Program-made: the position numbers and the translations under genes
Assembly (NCBI GenBank): GCA_965112735.1
Contig: OZ218965.1
Coordinates: forward strand, 1,798,001-1,862,000
Length of the DNA stretch: 64,000 nt
Direction: 5' to 3'
DNA from: Phaeosaccion multiseriatum
Taxonomy: Eukaryota > Protista > Ochrophyta, other classes
In this document: positions 41,464 to 64,000 of the stretch, piece by piece
Layout: each line of letters begins with the position of its first letter
Numbering within the stretch: position 1 is the first letter of the stretch
The notes under the pieces: generated by a model
Seen by the model: only the letters and a program-made list of their open reading frames with translations
Database searches by the model: none
Told to the model about the DNA's origin: nothing

Positions 41464-42875
41464 TCACCACTTTAATGAAGTAACCACGTGCGTGGGCCGT
41501 GCCTCTCTCTGTGGGAGATGCTTCTCGAGAAGCTGAGCAGACCAGACGCGCCAAGGCAGAGGAGGAGGAGGAGGAGGAGGAGGAGGAGGTAGTGAAGAAG
41601 GGAGGTCAACTATTGAGGCCGACGCGGTGCACCCTCAGCAAGAACGAAACAAAGAGCGCACCACCACACCCACACTCCGAGAGAGAGAGAGCAGAAAGAG
41701 AGAGAGGGCGAGAGGGACAGACACACACAGCGAGAGAGAGAGAGAGCAGAAAGAGATAGAGGGCGAGAGGGAGAGACACACACTCCGAGAGAGAGAGAGC
41801 AGAAAGAGATAGAGGGCGAGAGGGAGAGACACACACAGCGAGAGAGAGAGAGAGGGCGAGAGGGAGAGAAACACACTCCGAGAGAGAGAGAGCAGAAAGA
41901 GAGAGAGGGAGAGAGGGAGAGAGACACACACAGCGAGAGAGAGAGAGAGCAGAAAGAGATAGAGGGCGAGAGGGAGAGACACACACTCCGAGAGAGAGAG
42001 AGAGCAGAAAGAGAGAGAGGGAGAGAGGGAGAGACACACACTCCGAGAGAGAGAGAGAGCAGAAAGAGATAGAGGGCGAGAGGGAGAGACACACACTCCG
42101 AGAGAGAGAGAGCAGAAAGAGAGAGAGGGCGAGAGGGAGAGACACACACAGCGAGAGAGAGAGAGCAGAAAGAGAGAGAGGGCGAGAGGGAGAGACACAC
42201 ACTCCGAGAGAGAGAGAGAGCAGAAAGAGATAGAGGGCGAGAGGGAGAGACACACACGGCGAGAGAGAGAGAGAGCAGAAAGAGAGAGAGGACGAGAGGG
42301 AGACACACACACACAGCGAGAGAGAGAGCAGAAAGAGAGAGAGGGCGAGAGGGAGAGACACACACAGCGAGAGAGAGAGAGAGACGCGGGAAAGAGATAG
42401 AGAGACACCTGCGTGCTCCAGCCCCATATCCATCCCATGCCATGCCCTGGCGGGTACCCAACACCCAACACCCAATACTCAATACCCACTACCCTCTACC
42501 CAATACCCAATACCCACTACCCACTACCCAATACCCACTACCCACTACCCACTACCCACTACCCAATACCCAATACCCAATACCCCATACCCAATACCCA
42601 ATACCCAATACCCAATACCCAATACCCAATACCCAACACCCAATACCCAATACCCAATACCCAATACCCACTACCCAATACCCAATACCCAACACCCAAT
42701 ACCCAATAGTACACGAACTTGATTGAGTTTGTCATCGTCCGGCCTTGCATCTGCCCCTGGCGCTATGCCCAGCTCCTCGTAGTGCACTCCGCCTGTGGTG
42801 AAGATACTCTTCATTCCAGAGAGGTGCGCCCCCAGGATGTCGTGGCTGCCGGTGCGTGCGTGCGTGCGTGCGTGT

Positions 42876-50869: not shown

Positions 50870-53800
50870 AAAATAAGGAAGCAAGTCACAAATTCACAGC
50901 AAATAAGCCTCTGGGAGAAGGGGGGGAAGGGCACCACCAGTGATGAGTCTCAGGCGGCAACAGATGGAAAAGGATGCCAGCAGGAGGGTGCGGCGGTGCT
51001 GCTGTGCATGTACAGTCAGCCAGAAGAGGAGAGCGACACTTACAGGGCACGATATAGCAGTTTCGCAGGTAGCACTTGAGGTGCCGAGGAAGGATGCTCT
51101 CTGCGATGTACGGGGTGGTGCGATGCATGCAGAGGGCGGTAGGGGGATGAGTTCAAGGCCAATCACACCGGAAAGTAAAAGTAGCTAAGAGAAATGAGGA
51201 AAAAAATGAAGAACGTAAGCAACTAGTGGTGGTGGTGGTGGAGGAGGAGGGAGCGGGGGGCCACACACAAGTCGAGCAACAACAGCACCTCCACCTACTC
51301 GTCTCCCCCCAAACCCCTCCCCCTGAGACAAGAAGCAAAGAAGCCTCCGGAAGAAAGGGAGGAAGGGCACCGGCAGTGACGAGTCTCAGGCGGCAACACA
51401 TGGAAAAGGAGGCCAGCAGGAGGGTACGGCGGTGCTTGCTACTGTACATGTAAAGTGCAGAAGAGAGCGACACTTACAAGGCAAGCCCCCCCCCCACTGC
51501 AGGTAGCCTTTGAGTCGCCGAGAAAGGATGCTCGCTGCGATGTACGGGGTGGTGCGATGCGTGTAGAGGGCGGTAGGGGGGTGAGTTCAAGGCCAATCAG
51601 CCCACACCGGAAAGTAAGAGAAATGAGGAAAAAAATGAAGAACGTAAGCAACTAGTGTGGTGGTTGAGGGAGCGGGGGGGCCACACACAAGTCGAGCAAC
51701 AACAGCACCTCCATCTACTCGTCTCCCCCCAAACCCCTCCCCCTGAGACAAGAAGCAAAGAAGCCTCCGGAAGAAAGGGAGGAAGGGCACCGGCAGTGAC
51801 GAGTCTCAGGCGGTGGGAGAGATGGATAACAACACGCCAGCTGCTAGGAGGATGCCGCGGTTCACGTCACTGACTCACCAAACATGCGTCGACTTCGTGG
51901 CACTCCACCCGGTCGCAGTTCTGCAAGGCGAGCAAAGAGCAGCAAGCAATACAGATGGAATGTTCGAAAGTCACGAACCAAGCAACGCCCACGCAAAATG
52001 CACTTCGGGGTACTACAGCACACTGGCAGGTAGGCGAGTGGTGACAGTCAGACCAAGCGATGGGCTGACAATGAACCCGCTCCGCACGACACCACCTGCG
52101 CCGAAGCCAACCACGCTTCACTGTTCACCAAGCACCAGGCTTCGTTCACAACAAGTCAAGCTCTACGTACATTAAAGATGGCGTGCTGATACAGCCACAC
52201 GAGCGAGGGTAGAGAGAGCCCCAGGCATGTAACGGCAGAAACAATTGGCACCACAAGCCGTCGCCGAAGAGCAGCAGTCCAAGCGGGGAGGTGCAACAGG
52301 CAGGTACAGGTAGCAGCAACGACAGAGCCAAGGGGACGAGGTAGCGGGAGGGGGGTGGGAAAGAGCAGGTCACGGGAGCACAGACAATCGAAGTTCTCCT
52401 TCGAAGCAACAAGCACATTCTACAGGGCATGGGCGCTGCGAAAGGATGCAAACTGCGATGTGCAGGGGAAGAGCACATGGGTGGTGCGATGCATGTATGG
52501 GCAGGGGGGGGAGTGAGTTCAAGGCCAATCAGCCCACACCGGAAAGTAAGAGAAGTGAGGAAGCCTTCAGCTAGGCTACTAGCTAGGCTAGCCGACAACA
52601 AGTGAAGAATGCAAGCAACTAGGGTAGAAGGAGGGAACGGGACAGCCCACACACGAGTCGAGCAAGTACAAGCAACATGTTGGGGGGGGGGGCAGAGTTG
52701 TTAGGGCTAATCTATTTTACTCGTCTCCCCATCCCCTCGAGATCCAAGAAGTGGCCAGCCAGCAGAAGTGCTCTTTGGATGGGGCGAGCTGGAGAGGGCT
52801 TCACGTCACCGACTCACCGAACATGCGACGTCTTCGTGGCACTCCACCCGGTCGCAGTTCTGCAAGGCGAGCAAAGAGCAGCAAGCAATACAGATGGAAT
52901 GGTCGAAAGTCACGAACCGAGCAACGCCCACGCAAAATACACTTCGGGGTACTACAGCACACTGGCAGGCAGGCGAGTGGTGACAGTCAGACCAAGCGAT
53001 GGGCTGACAATGAACCCGCCCCGCACGACACCACCTGCGCCGAAGCCAACCACGCTTCACTGTTCACCAAGCACCAGGCTTCGTTCACAACAAGTCAAGC
53101 TCTACGTACATTAAAGTTGGCGCCCTGATACAGCCACACGAGCGAGGGTAGAGAGGCCCCCAGGCATGTAACGGCAGAAACAATTGGCACCACAAGCCAT
53201 CGCCGAAGAGCAGCAGTCCAAGCGGGAAGGTGCAACAGGCAGGTACAGGTAGCAACGACAGAGTCAAGGGGACGAGGTAGCGGGAGGGGGGTGGGAAAGA
53301 GCAGGTCACGGGAGCACAGACAATCGAAGTTCTCCTTCGAAGCAACAAGCACATTCTACAGGGCATGGGCGCTGCGAAAGGATGCAAACTGCGATGTGCA
53401 GGGGAAGAGCACATGGGTGGTGCGATGCATGTATGGGCAGGGGGGGGAGTGAGTTCAAGGCCAATCAGCCCACACCGGAAAGTAAGAGAAGTGAGGAAGC
53501 CTTCAGCTAGGCTAGCCGACAACAAGTGAAGAATGCAAGCAACTAGGGGTGGCTGATCGAGGGAACGGGACAGCCCACACACGAATCGAGTAAATACAAG
53601 CAACATCTCGTGGGGGGCGGGCAGAGTTGTTTGGGCTAATCCATTTCTCACTCCCCCTCATTCCCTCCTCGAGATCCAAGAACTGGCCAGCCAGCAGTAG
53701 TGCTCTTTGGATGGGCGAGCTGGAAAGGGCTTCACGTCACCGACTCACCAGACACGCATGATAGTTGCAAAGCACCACGTCGCAGTTCTGCAAGGCGGGC

Positions 53801-56172
53801 AAAGAGCAGCAAGCAATACAGATGGAATGCTCGAAAGTCATGTACCAAGCAACGCCCACGCAAATGCACTTCTGGGTACTACAGCACACTGGCAGGCAGG
53901 CGAGTGGTGACAGTCAGACCAAGCGATGGACTGACAATGAACCCGCTCCGCACAACACCACCTGCGCCGAAGCCAACCACGCGTCACTGTTCATCAAGCA
54001 CCAGGGTTCGTTCACAACAAGTCAAGCTCTACGTACATTAAAGTTGGTGTACTGATACAGCCACACGAGCGAGGGTAGAGAGAGCCCCAGGCATGTAACG
54101 GCAGAAACAATTGGCACCACAAGCCATCGCCGAAGAGCAGCAGTCCAAGCGGGGAGGTGCAACAGGCAGGTACAGGTAGCAGCAACGACAAAGCCAAGGG
54201 GAGGAGGTAGCGGGAGGGGGGTGGGAAAGAGCAGGTCACGGGAGCACAGACAATCGAAGTTCTCCTTCGAAGCAACAAGCACATTCTACAGGGCATGGGC
54301 GCTGCGAAAGGATGCAAACTGCGATGTGCAGGGGAAGAGCACATGGGGTGGTGCGATGCATGTATGGGCAGGGGGGGGAGTGAGTTCAAGGCCAATCAGC
54401 CCACACCGGAAAGTAAGAGAAGTGAGGAAGCCTTCAGCTAGGCTAGCCGACAACAAGTGAAGAATGCAAGCAACTAGTAGGGGTGGCTGAAGGAGGGAAC
54501 GGGACAGCCCACACACGAGTCGAGCAAGTACAAGCAACATGTGGGGGGGGGGGGCAGAGTTGTTAGGGCTAATCTATTTTACTCGTCTCCCCATCCCCTC
54601 GAGATCCAAGAACTGGCCAGCCAGCAGTAGTGCTCTTTGCATGGGGTGAAGTGGAAAGGGCTTCACGTCACCGACTCACCGAACACGCGTCAAAGGAGCA
54701 CTCCACGCTGCAGTCCTGCAAGGCGAGCAAAGAGCAGCAAGTAATACGGATGAAATGACCGAGAGTCATGAACCAAGCAACGCCCACGCCAAGGCACTTC
54801 GGGGTACTACAGCACACTTCACAGTCAGACCAAGCGATGGGCTGACAATGAACCCGCTCCGCACGACACCACCTGCGCCGAAGCCAACCACCCGTCACTG
54901 TTCACCAAGCACCAGGGTTCGTTCACAACAAGTCAAGCTCTACGTACATTAAAGTTGGCGTACTGACACAGCCACACGAGCGAGGGTACAGAGGCCCCCA
55001 GGCATGTAACGGCAGAAACAATTGGCACCACAAGCCATCGCCGAAGAGCAGCAGTCCAAGCCGGGAGGTGCAACAGGCAGGTACAGGTAGCAACGACAGA
55101 GCCAAGGGGACGAGGTAGCAGGAGGGGGGGGGGGGCAAGAGCAGCCACACGTGAGAGGAGGTCACGGGGAGCACAGACAATCGAAGTTCTCCTTCGAAGC
55201 AGCATGCACATTCTACAGGGCATGGGCGCTGCGGAAGGATGCAAACTGCGATGTGCAGGGGAAGAGCACATGGGGTGGTGCGATGCATGTATGGGCAGGG
55301 GGGGGAGTGAGTTCAAGGCCAATCAGCCCACACCGGAAAGTAAGAGAAGTGAGGAAGCCTTCAGCTAGGCTACTAGCTAGGCTAGCCGACAACAAGTGAA
55401 GAATGCAAGCAACTAGGGGTGGCTGAAGGAGGGAACGGGACAGCCCACACACGAGTCGAGCAAGTACAAGCAACATGTTGGGGGGGGGGGCAGAGTTGTT
55501 AGGGCTAATCTATTTTACTCGTCTCCCCATCCCCTCGAGATCCAAGAACTGGCCAGCCAGCAGTAGTGCTCTTTGGATGGGGCGAGCTGGAAAGGGCTTC
55601 ACGTCACCGACTCACATCACACGCGTCTGGGGTGTAGCACTCCACGAGGCAGTCCTGCAAGGCGAGCAAAGAGCGGCAAGCAACACGGATGGAATGCTCG
55701 AAAGTCACGAACCAAGCAACGCCCAGGCAAAATGCACTTCGGGGTACTACAGCACACTGGCAGGCAGGCGAGTGGTGACAGTCAGACCAAGCGATGGGCT
55801 GACAATGAACCCGCCCCGCACAACACCACCCACGCCTAAGCCAACCACGCGTCACTGTTCATCAAGCACCAGGCTTCGTTCACAACAAGTCAAGCTCTAC
55901 GTACATTAAAGTTGGCGTACTGACACAGCCACACGAGCGAGGGTACAGAGGCCCCCAGGCATGTAACGGCAGAAACAATTGGCACCACAAGCCATCGCCG
56001 AAGAGCAGCAGTCCGAGCGGGGGGGGGGAGGTGCAACAGGCAGGTACAGGTAGCAACGACAGAGTCAAGGGGACGAGGTAGCGGGAGGGGGGTGGGAAAG
56101 AGCAGCCACACGTGAGAGGAGGTCACGGGAGCACAGACAATCGAAGTTCTCCTTCGAAGCAACAAGCACATT
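50870..56172. repeat. Satellite-like tandem array: ~4.7 units of ~935 bp (from ~51860) preceded by shorter, related ~425 bp units
   Basis: Anchor ttcacgtcac at 51861, 52801, 53731, 54662 and 55598; anchor gagtctcaggcgg at ~50945, 51381 and 51801. Confidence 0.92.
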
Positions 56173-56368
56173 TGTCGAAACTACCGACAGCTAGCCTCAA
56201 AGCCAAGCTAGAGCAGAGCAGAAGCTGAAGCAAGCACCCGGAAGCCAGCCCACACGCAGGCTGCGCTTCCTTTCTTTTATTACTGATTTACCGTCTAGTT
56301 GGCCCGTTTTCCGGCCGTTACACTACTGATTGGGTCCCCAAGGGACCCCAACTAGGCCACTTCTAACA
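56173..56368 (-). repeat. 3' LTR (196 bp, TG...CA) of the gypsy element, with polypurine tract GAGGGGGA at 56369-56376
   Basis: On the minus strand it reads TGTTAGAAG...TTTCGACA directly after the PPT and breaks a satellite unit at aagcacatt|. Confidence 0.88.
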
Positions 56369-56406
56369 TCCCCCTCACTACACCCCCGCCTCTTCCGCCA
56401 GCTCCC

Positions 56407-59400
56407 TCAGAAGCCGAGATGCGAGCGATAGAATTGCGTCTCGTGCGCCAGCCCGCTGCCCCACTTCTCATGTTGCCGCAGACGGATCGTGCTTTCCCGT
56501 TTAGACCTATGCCCTCTTTTGACATTCACTCCTGGATCAAGGGCAGTGTGCGGGAGGGCGTTCTCGAACGCCTCTATGGCCTTGGCGTGTCCCCGCTCCA
56601 GTAACCACTCAGCCCATTCCCAGGTCTGGAAAGTGCCGCCGTCCGACACCGCCCACCGCACGTTATACTCTCGCCGCAGTGGCAGCCCCGTGGCTTTGCG
56701 CCAGCGGAACTTCACAATCCTCGCCAGCGTGGGCACTTTCCCTTCACTCACCTCGTCCAGCTCTAAGCTACGCTGCTCCTGCATTGCGCTGGTAGCCCAC
56801 TGAGGAGAGCACCAACGGATATGATACCTGGCGAATCCTTCCGGGAGACCGAAGGGTCGCTCGCTCACCCCATCGATGAACGGCTTCGTCAAGTCTCTGT
56901 GGTACGCCCGTTGCAGCTGCTCCACACCATTGCCGCGCACCCGTTTCATAGACAGATACACTGCGCTGCGCTGCATGACCTGGTAGTGCTCTTCACTCAC
57001 CCGCCCATGCTGAGCACAGTAGGCCCCCAGAGCTGGCCAAGGCAAGACTGTATAAGGACCATCCCACGAGTGCTGCAGAGCCTTGAGTTGCGCTGACGGG
57101 GGCCCTTCGAGTTCTTCCCCTTCTTGCTGGGCGGCGGCACCAGGACGATACAACATCACCTTGGTTCCGGGTCGCAGGGGCGTCGGCCAACGGCGTGAGG
57201 CGTTCTTCAGCTGCAATCTCCCGTGGTAGTCGCAGCGCCTCCCATTGACCACCGCCGCAGCCGCAGCCAGACGTGCCCGCAGTTCGTGGACCCATGCCGA
57301 GGCAGACGAAAACGACCCGTCCTCCACTAGCGCCGGAAGCATCGCCTGTAGAGGCACCGGGGGGTGCCGACCGAACAAGGCGTAGAATGGCGCCATCCCC
57401 GTGCTCTCCTGCGAGCGGCAGTTGTACGCATAGGTGAGCCCGGCGACGTAATCTGGCCACTGCTGCATCTGTGACTCCACGGTCGTCGCCAACATGTCCT
57501 TGATCGTGGCCATGAAGCGCTCCACCTGCCCATTGGCCTGTTGGTGCATCGGCGTCGTGAACACTTGCGACGCCGATAGAACTCGCATCACATCGCCCAT
57601 GAGCGCACTGGTGAACTGCGAGCCTTGATCACTCACCAGCACTCGGGGCACACCCAGGGTGGTGACGACATGCCGCACGAAGGCCCGAGCAATACCTTCC
57701 GCCGTATAGTCCTGTGCCCTCAAAGGCACCACCACTGTCCACTTCGTGAACCAATCCTGAAACACCAAGAGGTACTCCTCACCGCCCATGCCCATAGGAA
57801 AGGGGCCAGCCACATCAGCGCCCATGACCGCCCAAGGTCCATCCACCTTGGAAATGGACGACAGCGGCACAGGCTTTGGCTGCCGGCGAGGAGTCTTGCG
57901 TGTCTGGCACGCCAGACAGGAGCGGGCCCAATACAGCGCATGTGCATTCATCTTCTCCCACCATACGCGCTCTTGCAGCGCGTCTAGCATACGTCCCGGG
58001 CCTTGGTGCCCACCTGCGATGGCATCGGTGTGGGCGGCATGCAGCAAGGCTGGCCGCATCTCCTTGGGCACACATACTTGTAGCCGAGTGTGCCGCACCC
58101 GCCACCGAAAGCCCCCAGGAGCCCACTTACGCATCAAGAGCCCGTCCTCATCCACAAAGAACTCACCCCCACCTGCATCCACCACGCCGCCGGTGGGCCC
58201 AGCCTGAACACGGCGACGGAGTGCTTCCAGCTCCGCATCAGCCCGCTGCGCACGCACCCACCACGCGGCCTCGACATGCAGACTGCCACCCAAAGCTCCA
58301 GCCGCTCGTCTGTGCGCCGCGGCAGCAGGCACCGTGCCTGGTAGAGACCACCCAAACTGTCGCTCTGCCTCTCGTCGATGCCCATCAAGCTCGCGCTGCA
58401 AGGTGGACTCCTGCTCCACCGGCTCCTTGGAAACTGAATCCACTGCCTCCTCAGCTTCATTATCCACTGCATCCGCAGCTTCATCACCTGCATCCCCCGC
58501 TTCTTCCGTGACCAGTAGATCTGCCGTACCAGGCTCCGACGGCGACTCCGCAGCAGGCGGCTCCCCAGGGTGGGTGATGCGGCCCTCCTCCGTAACAAGC
58601 TCCTCCGAGGGCAGACGAGACGCATCCTCCTCAAGCTCGGCCTCCCATGCAGCCCACGCATGAGCGGCCGCGGCACCCGTTTGCTGAGCCTCCGCTGGTG
58701 TGCACATCGAGAAGTAGTCACGCGACACCTGACGGACTTGCTTCCATGGCAACTCGATCATGGTATCTAGATGACTGGCCAACGCGCCCACCACCTTCCG
58801 CTGGCGCTTATATGTCCGCGTGAACCGCTCCACCATCTGCATCATTGTCTCCCACGAGCACTGCAGTTTGAATTGCAGTTTGGCCAGGTCGAATACCTCC
58901 AACGTCTTGGAGTGGACACCAAAGATGTAGAGCGGTGACACGTGGTCGCGATCGCCCCAATAACCAACCGCGGCCTGCATGAACCTGCCGACTTGCATCT
59001 CCTCCTGCTCCGCAGGGGTGTGAGCAGGGCTCATCGCGCTAAGCTCCACCCCCGGGCCACCATGGACGAACGGCACACACTCCGCCATGCGAGGCCAGAG
59101 GCGGAGGAGCGCCGCAGCGTCAGCAAACGCGTACTCCCGTTGAGCGGCGGACAGCGGCCGCTTCGTCCAATCGGTGGCCCGCTCCTCCTTGCTAAGGTGT
59201 TGCTCCAAAAACATGCTGACAAGGTCCTGGAGTCCGATGAACTGAGTATGTTCGGGGCACACGCGCTTAAAGAGGTCACTGGTGTCCACCAAGTTGACGA
59301 TGTGCTGGACATGCTCCGCGAGCTCCGGCCATCGGCCCAGGGCACGTTGGTCGTGACTCCAGTGGTGAGCCAGCTTCACAATCGAGGGTTCGGTCCACAG

Positions 59401-62400
59401 GTCCCGCAACACTTGCGCCAGTACCATCATACCCCCCGCCTTCTGAAGCGCGTCTAGATCAATCAAGAGCCCATAGTCACGCGCCACATCCGGCAGCGGC
59501 CCAACCTGCACGGCCAATTGCAGCAGCGACGCGCGCCGTCGGTGACGCGCCCACTCCGAATCCATAGCGACCACTTTGGCTGAGCGCAACTGAGTCGATA
59601 GAGCCTGCACGTGCCTCGGCGTAGACACGTACGTGCACCTCGCTGCGGAAATGTGACTCACAAATGGCGGCATCTGACCCAGCTGCCAGGCCTCTATCAC
59701 AGCCTTCTTCACACCCAGCTGGGGTGCTCGCGTAGGCTGCCATCCACATTGCTGAAGACGCTGTGTCCAAGCACGCCGAGCAGTACCCCTGCGTGACTGC
59801 GTCGCCGCCAAGTCCACCTCTGCAGTCTGCCAGGCTTGTAGGGCCTCCGCTCCGCTCTGCTGCTGGTGGTGGCACCGTTGCTGCTGTTGCTGGGCCGTCA
59901 CGGCAGGCACAGGAATAGGAAGGCGTGTGTCGGCTTCGCCCTGCAGCTGTTGCGCCACTGCGAGAAAGCGAAGCAGTGCGCCCTCCGTGGGCTCCTCCCA
60001 ATGAAGGCTGCACTCGTCCCCTACCATCTCCACCAGGTTCAACTGCACCCCCATCGAAGCACACCAGGTGTGCAAGGGCGACGGCCACTCGCACGCAACC
60101 ATGGCCAAGTCTACCCCCGCATGCGTCTCCCACTCCTGCACCGGAAGCGCGTTGCGAGAGAGGCAGTCAGGCACCACCATTTGCTTCCCGGGACGATGCA
60201 CAAACTGCAAGTGGTGCGTAGAGAGCCGCTCGTACCATCTGAACAGCTTGGAATTGGTATCCTTGTGCCCAGCCAACCACAACAAGGGCTGATGGTCCGT
60301 CACCACTGTGGTGGGGTAGTGGCAGATGTACATGGCCAGTTTGCGCACACACCACACCACTGCCAGCAGCTCCAGCTCCGTGCTGCTCAGTCGCGCCTCC
60401 GTCTCCGTGGTAGCCCGACTGATGAACGTCACCACACGCTCCTCCCCGGTCGCATCTTTCTGAGAGAGCACTCCTGCTAACCCTTCCGTCGAGGCATCGG
60501 TACTCAGGGTGAAAGTCGTCGCTGGCCCGTACTCCGGAAAAGCCAGTGCAGGGGAAGACAACAAGTCGGCAACGAGTCCATCCCAAGCTGCATCGTGCGA
60601 GGCATTCCAGGCGGTGCTCACGTCGACGCCCTTACGCAGCAGCCCATTGAGGGGCCGCACTTTGCGCGCAAACTCCGGAATGAAACGGCGAAAGTAGCTG
60701 AGCATGCCAATGAAACGCCGCACCTGCTTAACTCGATTGACGCCGCCATCCTTCGCAAGCAACCTCAACGGCTTGACCAGCTCTTGCACCGCCGCATGCT
60801 TGGCCGGGTCTGTGCGCACCCCATTCTGATCCAGCAAATGCCCGCAGAACCGCACCTCCGGTGCACCCAATACAGCCTTACTCGGCTCCAACTTGAGCTT
60901 GTGCTCCACCAACCGCGCAAGCACAGCATCCAAATGCTCCAGATGCTGCTCAACCGTAGCCGAAAACACAGCAATATCGTCCACAAAGCATGCCACATGC
61001 TCCTGAAGCCCCTTGAGCACCTTGTTCATAAGCCGCACAAAGACTGCAGGCGCATTCTTCGCGCCCTGCGGCATCACTCGCCAAGCGTAAGTTCCACTGT
61101 GGCACACAAAGGTGGATATGTCCTCTTCCGCTGCTGATGCCATCGGCACATTGAAGTAGCCCGACATGATGTCCATCACCGAGAACACCTTGGAGCCATG
61201 CATCTCTGCCAGCAGATCATCAATCACCGGCATCGCAGGGGCCTCCGTGCGACACGCATCATTCAGCTGAGACAAGTCACACGTCATACGTACCACAGGC
61301 GTCCCATCCTCATGACACTTGGTTTTGCCAGCTGCGTCCGTCTTCAAGACCGCCATCAGCGGAGTAGCCCAGCTGGAAGTGCTGGGGCGAATGATGGCAG
61401 CCGCGAGAAGCTTGTCAATCTCAATCTCAATCCCCCGCCGCAAATGTGGAGGATACCGTCGAGCGGAGCTCCGAATGGGCTGCTGATTCGCATCCTTCAG
61501 TCCCCACTCAAAGAAGAGAGTATCCGTCCGACCGTAGTCACCAGGCCTCTGACAGAATGCTTGCGACCGAGCGCGAAGGATCGCCACCAGTCCCCAGCGT
61601 TGCACCTCCGTCCAGGCACCGTCGCCAATCGTGATAGCGTGCAGGGGCGACGGTAGCTCCCTGAGCCAGAACTGAGCCCTCTCCGTAGTGAGCTTGGCAC
61701 GGCGCCGCTGCTCCACCACAAGCTCTCCTGCATCCCACGACTCCACTCCCCCACCAAGACAGCGACTCTCCTGCAGCACCGTTCGCAATTGGATGAGGAG
61801 CAGCAGCGCATTGGTCATATCCTGCTCCACCTTCTCCTGCTGCTGTAATGGGCGACTAGACCACAACGACAAGAGCTGTTGGGCCCATGCGGCCACAGCA
61901 ACGTCCCCAACGCCGCTCAGACCCGTGCCAGCGGCTTGGTGTACATGGGGGCGCAGGAGCAGTAGCGCGGTCACAGCCCCTTCCTCTGCCGCAACCAAGC
62001 ACTCGCGCAGACGTCCATACACTCGCTCTGACAGGTGAGGGTACCACTCCTTGATCAACTGCACTCCTGCCATCAGAGTCCCACCGGACGTGTCACTCTG
62101 GCTACCGAGTCGCAAGGCACCATCCGCATCCAGTACCCACCCATCACCGCGTAGGTCAGTCAATGATGTGCCCACCGCCGCCGACGATGAACCTGCCTCG
62201 GACCGTAGTGGCGGTTCCTCCGACGCCACTGACGATGCCGCCCCTGGCGCAGGCCTGCTGGTGGAATCATCAGCCCCCGCCACGTGGTGGACCTGCAGCT
62301 GGCCTGTACGAGGCGGTCGGGGCTCCTGCAACTGTGTCTGACGGCGTCGCGCTACCGCCGCCGGAGCCACCTGCTGCTGTACCGCATTGGACCGCTGAAC

Positions 62401-62871
62401 CTGCTGAGCTGCCGACGAATCCGCTCGCTTAAAGAGCTCTTCCCGCTGGGCCTTGTGCCGTCGCTGCAATGCCCACTGGCGTTGCTGCCGTGCCTGCTGC
62501 TGTGCCGCTTGTAACCGCTTGGCCTGCTGCGTTGCCAACCAGGCTGCTGTCTCCTCCTTCGAGTCCACTCGTGGTGTGTCAGCTCGTCTGGCCGGCACTC
62601 GCACTGTCCCCCCAGGAGGGCGCCAAGGGCACGCGACGCTCCCGCGGCACCTGTCGTTGCCCCAAGTCGCTCCCCCAAGCGAGACGAAGCCCTCGGTGAT
62701 GCCAGGCGCAGGAGCCGTCAGCGCACAGCTCCCGTCGCAGCGGCAAAACTTGTCGTCGCACTTGCTCATGGCGCTCCAACACTGCTTGCCGATGAACCTG
62801 GTCCCACAGCACAGGAGACTCCACAAGCATTGATGCCACTCTCCGACGTTGCCGCTGCAACCGCCCAGCAC
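56407..62871 (-). CDS. Gypsy Pol: RT, RNase H, DEDDy 3'-5' exonuclease, integrase, chromodomain-like C-terminus
   Basis: RT: MDIMSGYFNV, MPQGAKNAP, FVDDI. RH: TDAS, ELE, TDH, PDCLSR. Exonuclease: MDSEW, HD, YAFAD. IN: H...H, CLAC, GADVAGP, SDQGSQF, NGQVER. Chromo-like: EYNVRW...TWE. Confidence 0.95.
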   Translation of the reverse strand: MLGGCSGNVGEWHQCLWSLLCCGTRFIGKQCWSAMSKCDDKFCRCDGSCALTAPAPGITEGFVSLGGATWGNDRCRGSVACPWRPPGGTVRVPARRADTPRVDSKEETAAWLATQQAKRLQAAQQQARQQRQWALQRRHKAQREELFKRADSSAAQQVQRSNAVQQQVAPAAVARRRQTQLQEPRPPRTGQLQVHHVAGADDSTSRPAPGAASSVASEEPPLRSEAGSSSAAVGTSLTDLRGDGWVLDADGALRLGSQSDTSGGTLMAGVQLIKEWYPHLSERVYGRLRECLVAAEEGAVTALLLLRPHVHQAAGTGLSGVGDVAVAAWAQQLLSLWSSRPLQQQEKVEQDMTNALLLLIQLRTVLQESRCLGGGVESWDAGELVVEQRRRAKLTTERAQFWLRELPSPLHAITIGDGAWTEVQRWGLVAILRARSQAFCQRPGDYGRTDTLFFEWGLKDANQQPIRSSARRYPPHLRRGIEIEIDKLLAAAIIRPSTSSWATPLMAVLKTDAAGKTKCHEDGTPVVRMTCDLSQLNDACRTEAPAMPVIDDLLAEMHGSKVFSVMDIMSGYFNVPMASAAEEDISTFVCHSGTYAWRVMPQGAKNAPAVFVRLMNKVLKGLQEHVACFVDDIAVFSATVEQHLEHLDAVLARLVEHKLKLEPSKAVLGAPEVRFCGHLLDQNGVRTDPAKHAAVQELVKPLRLLAKDGGVNRVKQVRRFIGMLSYFRRFIPEFARKVRPLNGLLRKGVDVSTAWNASHDAAWDGLVADLLSSPALAFPEYGPATTFTLSTDASTEGLAGVLSQKDATGEERVVTFISRATTETEARLSSTELELLAVVWCVRKLAMYICHYPTTVVTDHQPLLWLAGHKDTNSKLFRWYERLSTHHLQFVHRPGKQMVVPDCLSRNALPVQEWETHAGVDLAMVACEWPSPLHTWCASMGVQLNLVEMVGDECSLHWEEPTEGALLRFLAVAQQLQGEADTRLPIPVPAVTAQQQQQRCHHQQQSGAEALQAWQTAEVDLAATQSRRGTARRAWTQRLQQCGWQPTRAPQLGVKKAVIEAWQLGQMPPFVSHISAARCTYVSTPRHVQALSTQLRSAKVVAMDSEWARHRRRASLLQLAVQVGPLPDVARDYGLLIDLDALQKAGGMMVLAQVLRDLWTEPSIVKLAHHWSHDQRALGRWPELAEHVQHIVNLVDTSDLFKRVCPEHTQFIGLQDLVSMFLEQHLSKEERATDWTKRPLSAAQREYAFADAAALLRLWPRMAECVPFVHGGPGVELSAMSPAHTPAEQEEMQVGRFMQAAVGYWGDRDHVSPLYIFGVHSKTLEVFDLAKLQFKLQCSWETMMQMVERFTRTYKRQRKVVGALASHLDTMIELPWKQVRQVSRDYFSMCTPAEAQQTGAAAAHAWAAWEAELEEDASRLPSEELVTEEGRITHPGEPPAAESPSEPGTADLLVTEEAGDAGDEAADAVDNEAEEAVDSVSKEPVEQESTLQRELDGHRREAERQFGWSLPGTVPAAAAHRRAAGALGGSLHVEAAWWVRAQRADAELEALRRRVQAGPTGGVVDAGGGEFFVDEDGLLMRKWAPGGFRWRVRHTRLQVCVPKEMRPALLHAAHTDAIAGGHQGPGRMLDALQERVWWEKMNAHALYWARSCLACQTRKTPRRQPKPVPLSSISKVDGPWAVMGADVAGPFPMGMGGEEYLLVFQDWFTKWTVVVPLRAQDYTAEGIARAFVRHVVTTLGVPRVLVSDQGSQFTSALMGDVMRVLSASQVFTTPMHQQANGQVERFMATIKDMLATTVESQMQQWPDYVAGLTYAYNCRSQESTGMAPFYALFGRHPPVPLQAMLPALVEDGSFSSASAWVHELRARLAAAAAVVNGRRCDYHGRLQLKNASRRWPTPLRPGTKVMLYRPGAAAQQEGEELEGPPSAQLKALQHSWDGPYTVLPWPALGAYCAQHGRVSEEHYQVMQRSAVYLSMKRVRGNGVEQLQRAYHRDLTKPFIDGVSERPFGLPEGFARYHIRWCSPQWATSAMQEQRSLELDEVSEGKVPTLARIVKFRWRKATGLPLRREYNVRWAVSDGGTFQTWEWAEWLLERGHAKAIEAFENALPHTALDPGVNVKRGHRSKRESTIRLRQHEKWGSGLAHETQFYRSHLGF

Positions 62872-63979
62872 CCACTCGACTCTGACGACACTGACTCCCC
62901 TTCTTGCCGCTGCGCTGCAAATGCTGAAACCGGGCCTTCACTGCCGGCTGAGGCACCAGAGTCGATGGCACCCCCACCTCAGTCCGTGGGTGCGTCAGGG
63001 CCTGCACCTGCACAGCTTGCAGCGGAAGCGCCGTAGCCCCCAGCTCAGCCTCCTCTGGTACCACCGAGCAGCGAACTACAGGCCCCTGCGGTGGGCACCA
63101 GACCGGCTCAGCTCCTGCTTCAGCTTCAGCCGGCTGCTGCGACGCCTCCTCCTCCACCACAGACTCAACCGCCTCCCGCGCCTTGGACCATGGCAGCCTG
63201 CGCTTCACCACACGCCTCACCATCCCGCCAAGAGCACCAAGCCAGGAGGAGGGGGCCGCTGCAGTCTCCGGCATGGTATCTGAAGAAGCCGGCTCAGCGA
63301 GCATGAGCGCGGCCACCTCAGCGCTCGCCTCCGAGTCGAGCAAGCAAGAAGCGGTGCCGATGACCTGCCCAGGAACGACCACAATGACCTGATTGTGGTG
63401 ATTCTGCACTGTGATTCGGTAACTCTGCCCCCCAGCATACACACCATCTTTGTGCGCCACTAGAACCTGCTCGTGCTCCAGCCACCATAGAACGTCCGCC
63501 TCTGCCGCCAAGTGTCCGTGAGCGCCCAGCTCCACCACCGCCTGGACACCCTCAACGATACCCGTAAGCTCGAGGAGAAGGGACCCCGTCTGTCCAGGTC
63601 CCAAGCTCAAAGCCTCCACAGCACGTACCCCCCCAACAGCAGCGTTGCCGTCCACCACTGCCAGCACTTGCACAGCCAAGGCATCGGACGGACGAGCATC
63701 CGACGTGGCCTCCTCCGAAGGAGTCGGAAGTACGTAGAGCTGCTTCGCACGATGATCGACGACTGCCCCTACTTGGGTGAAGAAATCCTGCCCCAAGAAG
63801 ATGGGCCGCGCCAAGTGGTCCACCACATGAAAGGGTAGCACCGGCTGGCACGTCGGCGTGAGTCCCACCTGAAGCCAAACAAGCCCTCTGGACATAGTCT
63901 TGGCACGATTGTCAGCGTAAGACACCTGCACCCCCTTCTGCGTGGCGAGCTCTGACCGCTCCACCGTGCCATCCGCCAC
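62579..63979 (-). CDS. Upstream part of the gypsy polyprotein: aspartic protease C-half plus degenerate dUTPase-like region, offset by one frame from the Pol ORF
   Basis: FHVVDHLARPIFLGQDFF is a retropepsin ILGxDF-type motif. LSLGPGQT...ITVQNHHNQVIVVVPGQVIG resembles the dUTPase-like fold. Confidence 0.75.
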   Translation of the reverse strand: MADGTVERSELATQKGVQVSYADNRAKTMSRGLVWLQVGLTPTCQPVLPFHVVDHLARPIFLGQDFFTQVGAVVDHRAKQLYVLPTPSEEATSDARPSDALAVQVLAVVDGNAAVGGVRAVEALSLGPGQTGSLLLELTGIVEGVQAVVELGAHGHLAAEADVLWWLEHEQVLVAHKDGVYAGGQSYRITVQNHHNQVIVVVPGQVIGTASCLLDSEASAEVAALMLAEPASSDTMPETAAAPSSWLGALGGMVRRVVKRRLPWSKAREAVESVVEEEASQQPAEAEAGAEPVWCPPQGPVVRCSVVPEEAELGATALPLQAVQVQALTHPRTEVGVPSTLVPQPAVKARFQHLQRSGKKGSQCRQSRVGAGRLQRQRRRVASMLVESPVLWDQVHRQAVLERHEQVRRQVLPLRRELCADGSCAWHHRGLRLAWGSDLGQRQVPRERRVPLAPSWGDSASAGQTS

Positions 63980-64000
63980 CAGTTGATTGAAGCAGGCTGT

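Follow-up and report, generated by a model that had tools for sequence, protein, structure and literature searches.

DEDDy 3′-5′ exonucleases are known from bdelloid rotifers, where the long terminal repeat (LTR) retrotransposons Juno and Vesta and the Athena/Terminon retroelements encode them as a separate third open reading frame, ORF3 (PMC5408684; PMC6431247). This ORF3 lies downstream of pol with DEED in place of the DEDDy motif, and its evolution was not reported to depart from neutrality (Rodriguez, Kenefick and Arkhipova 2017, PMC5408684). In the literature searched it is the only DEDDy precedent in a retrotransposon, and its function there is unknown (PMC5408684). Here we analyze a 64,000-nucleotide stretch of the Phaeosaccion multiseriatum genome (assembly GCA_965112735.1, contig OZ218965.1, positions 1,798,001 to 1,862,000, hereafter the window), which carries part of a 12.45-kb Ty3/gypsy LTR retrotransposon whose Pol polyprotein holds a DEDDy exonuclease domain in frame between RNase H and integrase. 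An earlier annotation made from the letters alone (the sequence-only reading) had described the bdelloid DEDDy ORFs as separate extra ORFs, which the published description confirms (PMC5408684). The likeness to Juno and Vesta lies in an accessory DEDDy domain of the RNase D/WRN/Mut-7 type and in element-borne exonucleases that are nearer to each other than to cellular ones; as judged from the published description, the difference is that here the exonuclease lies in frame within Pol, its DEDDy motif is intact and its substitutions bear the mark of purifying selection.

In an opinion paper of 2019, the accessory domains named for LTR-element polyproteins include a DnaQ-like exonuclease (PMC6338049). 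Three sources are cited for this: the article on rotifers, which reports the DEDDy ORF3 (PMC5408684), Ustyantsev 2017, which mentions no exonuclease, and Novikova 2008. The order RNase H, exonuclease, integrase was not reported in the literature and protein databases searched, a search outside which stood the repeat libraries Repbase, Dfam and GyDB.

Two further systems bear on the comparison. The Dada elements, DNA transposons found in Laccaria bicolor and Ectocarpus siliculosus, have a DEDDy domain within the DDE transposase (Kojima and Jurka 2013, PMC3706591), and its authors proposed a role in 3′-end processing during transposition (PMC3706591). Dada and the present element both combine a DEDDy domain retaining all catalytic residues with the DDE recombinase of a mobile element on the same polypeptide. 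However, Dada is a class II element whose exonuclease lies within the transposase core, whereas here it is a separate domain of a retrotransposon, about 340 amino acids (aa) upstream of a retroviral-type integrase.

In other LTR lineages, an extra RNase H follows the native one and precedes the integrase. Such additional RNases H have been acquired independently by LTR retrotransposons and retroviruses, plant Tat and oomycete elements included (PMC5348765, PMC10508981). Like these, the present element is an LTR lineage with an added nuclease of the RNase H superfamily; unlike them, in which the addition is an RNase H1-type endonuclease, it has gained a DEDDy exonuclease, and its native RNase H keeps the acidic motifs.

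An exonuclease domain within Pol

The Pol ORF occupies positions 56407-62871 of the minus strand and encodes 2154 aa counted from the first GTG, or 2176 aa from stop to stop, the stop-to-stop frame extending to 62937. The sequence-only reading had placed an exonuclease within this 2154-aa ORF, between RNase H and the integrase zinc finger, and gave no strand. All the peptides it quoted (VVAMDSEW, ASLLQLA, KLAHHWSHDQRAL, NLVDT and YAFADAAALL) were found in the ORF as the minus-strand reading of 59080-59640; the plus-strand translation of that interval is rich in stops. Scanning Pol with Pfam profiles yielded the order RVT_1, RT_RNaseH, DNA_pol_A_exo1, Integrase_H2C2 and rve, and the exonuclease profile thus falls between RT_RNaseH and rve, where that reading had expected it. 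The exonuclease domain itself (59083-59631, minus strand, aa 1081-1263) matched DNA_pol_A_exo1 (PF01612, curated cut-off 23.6 bits) with an E value of 8.1e-21 and 75 bits, far above chance.

The neighboring enzymes, all on the minus strand, were delimited in the same scan. The reverse transcriptase (RT) spans 60838-61278 (aa 532-678; RVT_1, E = 1.6e-27), with FVDD at aa 629. The RNase H (RH) spans 60220-60609 (aa 755-884), where RT_RNaseH covers aa 784-884 (E = 2.1e-28) and RT_RNaseH_2 aa 755-856 (E = 1.2e-22); the acidic motifs of this domain, located in Pol as STDAS, STELE and VVTDHQ, were taken by eye to be catalytic. Downstream of the exonuclease, the zinc-binding domain of the integrase (IN) lies at 57892-58071 (aa 1601-1660; Integrase_H2C2, E = 2.4e-15), followed by the catalytic core at 57559-57819 (aa 1685-1771), where rve reached 27.9 bits, under its cut-off of 32.6. 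The motifs MGADVAG, VLVSDQG and NGQVERF were located in this core and taken by eye as its D, D and E. With the exonuclease placed after an intact RNase H and ahead of the integrase, Pol comprises three RNase-H-fold nucleases in succession.

Two stretches connect the exonuclease to its neighbors. The linker on the RNase H side (59632-60219, minus strand, about 190 aa) matched no family in the Pfam scan; it is 39% identical between the two element families described below, with a dN/dS of 0.35. The region on the integrase side (58072-59082, minus strand, aa 1264-1600, about 340 aa) is partly acidic and has no supported family: a language model gave a weak likeness to PAP_assoc (0.83, low recognition), which Pfam does not confirm. 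This region is nevertheless kept between families, at 35-43% identity and a dN/dS of 0.24-0.44. An in-frame segment of 39 nt near 58605, present in most copies, is absent from the window copy. At the Pol C-terminus, a chromodomain-like motif (56590-56727, minus strand, aa 2049-2094) was recognized by eye only; it is 65% identical between families. No Chromo domain was matched in Pol even at an E value of 10, whereas several RT relatives do carry PF00385, and Pfam gave no match on the N-terminal 500 aa or on the C-terminus.

Catalytic residues and fold of the exonuclease

The sequence-only reading had claimed a motif-complete DEDDy signature, and all of its parts were found. On the minus strand, the ExoI D-x-E corresponds to D1104 (59560-59562) and E1106 (59554-59556) in VVAMDSEW, the ExoII aspartate to D1174 (59350-59352) in HHWSHDQ, and the ExoIII Y-x3-D to Y1247 (59131-59133) and D1251 (59119-59121) in YAFAD. 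All five residues (D47, E49, D117, Y190 and D194 in fragment numbering) are invariant in an alignment of 33 sequences, comprising the two element families, a metagenomic relative (P0001) and the 30 best matches of an exhaustive search. They are likewise invariant across the three element-type sequences, i.e., both families and P0001.

A profile of this alignment, compared with the Protein Data Bank, retrieved the EXO domain of the Mut-7 homologue Nibbler first (E = 2.7e-34), then EXD2, WRN and Rrp6. In the search of solved structures, the ExoI D-S-E, the aspartate of SHDQ and the ExoIII Y-A-F-A-D align to the motifs of Trypanosoma Rrp6. AlphaFold modeling from the 33 sequences gave a predicted local distance difference test (pLDDT) score of 93.4 and a predicted template modeling score of 0.89; from two sequences only, the pLDDT was 55. 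The best Foldseek matches to the model were the EXO domain of Nibbler/Mut-7, Rrp6, the WRN exonuclease and RNase D (E = 3e-11 to 2e-10), and against the solved structures of Nibbler, WRN, Rrp6 and RNase D the probability was 1.00 with TM scores of 0.64-0.73. The second-family exonuclease scored 56 bits against PF01612.

Profile, motifs and modeled fold together identify the domain as a genuine member of the DEDDy-type (DnaQ-like, PF01612) 3′-5′ exonuclease family. We hold this identity, along with the upkeep of the domain by selection described below, with high confidence. The domain has its Pfam family, all five catalytic residues and its fold in common with the cellular Mut-7/Nibbler/EXD3, WRN-exo, RNase D and Rrp6 proteins. 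It differs from them in showing only 24-35% identity to the best cellular matches, in forming a separate clade on a long stem, and in its context, since the Pfam scan found no Mut7-C, HRDC or helicase partner domain in Pol.

Two element families carry the domain

The exonuclease domain is present in frame, at the same position of Pol, in about 30 further copies on many contigs of the genome. Identity divides these into about 20 occurrences at 89-100% (family 1, to which the window copy belongs) and about 10 near 60% (family 2), the copies of both families lying mostly in long open frames. The case considered at the outset, a domain present in this copy only, is contradicted by these counts. 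Between the two families the exonuclease is 59% identical. Family 2 repeats the Pfam order. Its element is about 13.9 kb long and has its own LTRs of 201 bp, the two of the examined copy being identical. At least eight full-length family-1 copies have LTR pairs 12.26-12.44 kb apart, several of these LTRs being identical to those of the window copy, and four copies are 99.9-100% identical to the window copy over 3.5 kb. Since LTRs are identical and copies nearly so over 3.5 kb, the family moved very recently. The same stretch also occurs in independent public runs, which stem from another sample and another study.

All Pols of the genome whose RT-RH identity is 75% or higher are members of family 1 or 2 and carry the exonuclease; the next gypsy lineages of the same genome, at 31-35% RT-RH identity, are without it. 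A different gypsy-type RT, 33% identical, was observed at C10:8280-9338 within an unusually long open frame of 4622 aa.

Two other sites of the genome were recorded for their repeat content. On contig C14, at 2.30-2.76 Mb, both exonuclease-bearing families are densely clustered as intact copies, broken copies and solo LTRs, and this could be a repeat-rich or centromere-like region. At C5:3001-13000, a family-2 copy lies near the contig end with kilobases of 15-nt and 12-nt simple repeats on its flanks.

Selection on the exonuclease

Between families, the exonuclease has a dN of 0.37 and a dN/dS of about 0.20, against 0.06-0.08 for the RT, RH and IN core and 0.35 and 0.44 for the flanking linkers; as dS between the families is saturated (1.1-2.5), these ratios are rough. 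An unsaturated pair, a family-1 sublineage and the window copy, differs in the exonuclease by 16 synonymous and 12 non-synonymous changes, i.e., a ratio of 0.24, which departs from neutrality (binomial p = 1.9e-4). None of 19 copies has a stop codon inside the exonuclease. The domain is thus retained, with a ratio near 0.2 at deep and shallow divergence, and the neutral evolution that the sequence-only reading had set against its proposal is not what the copies exhibit. These substitution patterns indicate purifying selection on the exonuclease, of lesser strength than on the core enzymes.

Along Pol, synonymous divergence between family-1 sublineages (relative to window 57580-61140) varies about fourfold, from 0.33 in the linker between RNase H and exonuclease to 0.085 after the exonuclease. 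This unevenness suggests recombination between sublineages.

Distribution and origin of the domain

The sequence-only reading had stated that canonical Ty3/gypsy Pol has no such domain. In agreement, the 120 Pol relatives nearest to it in a collection of 5.8 billion proteins, all at 39% RT-RH identity or less, lack PF01612 among their listed domains. When 1.84 billion representative proteins were searched exhaustively with HMMER for the exonuclease, one close relative was recovered, P0001 (E = 2e-41, about 45% identical), which stems from a 917-bp metagenome contig without informative context. The remaining matches, at 82 bits or less, are cellular proteins, some with the Mut-7 architecture (exonuclease followed by Mut7-C) and some from protists including Tribonema; no long match contains RT or IN, all being cellular multidomain proteins (Mut7-C, tRNA_edit, ankyrin). 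A scan of JGI metagenomes found distant exonucleases only, none with RT or IN nearby. A word-indexed search for Pol-sized proteins with the exonuclease region gave no match, in a collection that may simply omit this genome.

In a tree of 123 domains, families 1 and 2 and P0001 form one clade, with a Shimodaira-Hasegawa approximate likelihood ratio test (SH-aLRT) support of 97, whose stem measures 1.16 changes per site. Its weak sister is RNase D-like, with exonuclease and HRDC (SH-aLRT 90). The clade is not placed inside the Mut-7 group with support, and the Mut-7 likeness is one of fold and profile only. The DEDDy homologue of the host, on contig 4, groups with Tribonema in a large cellular group of the tree, and the host DEDDy genes reach 27 bits at best against the element exonuclease. 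Recent capture from the host was rejected on these grounds, the host genes being at 27 bits or less and elsewhere in the tree. The element clade lies on a long stem with the host homologue elsewhere; any capture is therefore old. Of the claim that Pol carries a captured host exonuclease, to be examined against the host enzymes by phylogeny, what holds is the separateness of the element domains as a clade of their own; a host origin receives no support.

Structure and coding organization of the element

Since the window cuts the element, neighboring DNA of the same contig (C16) was added for the analysis. The 3′ LTR (56173-56368, minus strand, 196 bp) has TG...CA ends; the 5′ LTR, also of 196 bp, lies outside the window at C16:1866429-1866624, equivalent to window position 68429-68624. 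The two are 100% identical over 196 bp, and the LTR has 41 matches genome-wide. A target-site duplication, AATG on the element strand (56169-56172, minus strand), borders the 3′ LTR, and the same four letters flank the 5′ LTR, just past its end and outside the window. The polypurine tract is a purine-rich run ending GAGGGGGA (56369-56399, minus strand), directly upstream of the 3′ LTR. Identical LTRs, TG...CA termini and a purine run abutting the 3′ LTR bear out the earlier view of an element with intact ends and of young age. The domain order RT, RNase H, integrase, the gypsy-type Pols found as nearest relatives, the LTRs, the 4-bp duplication and the polypurine tract are all features of Ty3/gypsy elements.

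Upstream of Pol lies a 556-aa ORF with a CCHC knuckle, which stops at a TGA, after which an ORF of 1172 aa continues in the same frame. The 3′ part of the latter (62579-64000, minus strand) overlaps Pol in another frame, includes a protease-like motif, FLGQDFF, and exits the window. Pfam matched neither of these family-1 ORFs; in the second family, the upstream region has a weak gag-asp_proteas match (E = 0.008). A two-letter shortfall relative to most copies (62607-62613, minus strand) puts the upstream ORF and Pol of the window copy in different frames. The longer form at 62607-62613 is found in most contigs of the public runs, and a copy on contig 1, 98.6% identical, has a continuous frame of 3274 aa from the TGA at the gag end through the end of Pol. 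A twin copy on contig 14 shares the 2176-aa frame; the split-frame form has therefore itself been copied, via frameshifting or with help from other copies.

At the end of the gag-like ORF, a single TGA followed by C (element position 2525-2527) precedes the next ORF in frame, and a second copy is alike, which suggests gag-pol expression through stop-codon read-through at this site. A TGG primer-binding site of the tRNA type was sought next to the 5′ LTR and none was present. The nucleotides directly after the 5′ LTR (9 nt in family 1, 8 nt in family 2) are complementary to a site within the LTR, about 30 nt past a TATA-like box; its letters differ by family and the pairing is retained through compensatory changes. 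This pairing suggests self-priming of the Tf1 type.

Other repeats in the window

A tandem array of about 930-bp period, with units 87-93% alike, extends over window 51112-56171 and C16:1866646-1868987 and is interrupted by the element. Satellite-targeted integration was considered and rejected, the array being confined to C16, C3 and C6. Further away, a GA-rich tandem repeat occupies window 41679-42383 (period 55/108 bp, 84-91% matches), and the heptamer TACCCAA is repeated 36 times at window 42455-42708, with the same array at five other internal sites of the genome. A telomeric nature of this heptamer was rejected because all arrays are internal and none lies at a contig end.

Possible roles of the exonuclease

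By a narrow preference, we take the domain to be an active nuclease whose substrates are replication intermediates of the element itself. It would be made as part of Gag-Pol, would be packaged with RT and integrase, and would act on these intermediates as a metal-dependent 3′-end nuclease. This reading may take two forms. In a DNA version, which we put forward as a tentative possibility, mismatched or non-templated 3′ nucleotides would be removed before strand transfer or integration, amounting to proofreading or trimming; the analogy with Dada, the adjoining of the domain to the integrase side and the large size of the element are points in its favor. In an RNA version, itself somewhat doubtful, template or primer RNA would be cleared at RNA 3′ ends, as suggested by the mostly RNA-acting nearest relatives and by the parallel with the extra RNase H at the RH-IN junction. 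We regard the two versions as about equally likely. The narrower proposal that the exonuclease works with RT or integrase on complementary DNA (cDNA) 3′ ends, removing misincorporated or non-templated nucleotides, appears unlikely.

The coronavirus exonuclease ExoN of nsp14 offers a further parallel: it is a DEDD-superfamily 3′-5′ exonuclease in a replicase with a non-proofreading polymerase, and has been connected with an unusually large genome. It is of the DEDDh type, belongs to an RNA virus and has no sequence kinship with the element exonuclease. The element is likewise unusually large, and a fidelity role drawn from this parallel would be pure hypothesis.

Several observations weigh against the reading that the domain processes intermediates of the element. 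Its closest relatives, both cellular and structural (Nibbler/Mut-7, RNase D and Rrp6), are mostly RNA-acting, which speaks against DNA proofreading. The partners of the domain (RT-RH, IN or neither) would hinge on the protease cleavage pattern. In the window copy, Pol and the upstream ORF bearing the protease motif occupy different frames. The public runs containing the element all look like DNA assemblies and are silent on expression. Finally, pooled within-family pN/pS in the exonuclease is only about 0.5, a value to be expected if much of the variation postdates insertion.

The same resemblance to Nibbler/Mut-7, which are small-RNA 3′-end trimmers and give the best structural and profile matches, could be read as counter-defence, the exonuclease trimming or destroying host small RNAs or their precursors and so blunting RNA silencing of the element. 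Proteins of the Mut-7 architecture are among the best-scoring cellular matches, and the family is highly successful in this genome. However, Pol contains neither Mut7-C nor another small-RNA-pathway domain, the tree gives no supported placement within the Mut-7 group, and a domain locked in Gag-Pol is expected mainly inside particles; we consider this role distinctly improbable. A domain that no longer cuts and serves as a nucleic-acid-binding module or spacer, like EXD1, Maelstrom or Egalitarian, seems less probable still: the five catalytic residues, which inactive relatives typically lose, are invariant across two families 59% identical and in the approximately 45% identical P0001, even though the exonuclease is less constrained than the RT, RH and IN core, EXD1 and Egalitarian are among the structure and profile matches, and DEDD domains that are inactive and do no more than bind RNA have been described (PMC5408684). 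That a host exonuclease fragment was joined to one copy by assembly error, nested insertion or read-through was raised because the domain is unprecedented at this position; no point supports it. It is refuted by the approximately 20 family-1 and 10 family-2 copies holding the domain in frame at the same place on many contigs, by its presence in the independent public runs and by the distant relationship of the host's own homologues, which leave it a negligible probability.

Significance

Reverse transcriptases are the textbook example of polymerases without proofreading. A retroelement-borne exonuclease in the form of a separate ORF was already known; what appears new, against the literature and protein databases searched, is a retroelement-borne DEDDy exonuclease fused within Pol and kept by selection. 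It represents a third kind of RNase-H-fold nuclease at the RH-IN junction, where other lineages have repeatedly gained an extra RNase H. With a nuclease inside Pol that is catalytically complete by its sequence and selected in two diverged families, this recently mobile element provides a clean, assayable system, in which a single domain and a single point mutant could distinguish between cDNA editing, RNA clearing and an attack on host small RNAs. If action on cDNA 3′ ends holds true, this would be the first known reverse-transcribing element with a proofreading or end-editing nuclease of its own, and such editing might explain the upkeep of a retrotransposon of 12-14 kb that is almost fully coding.

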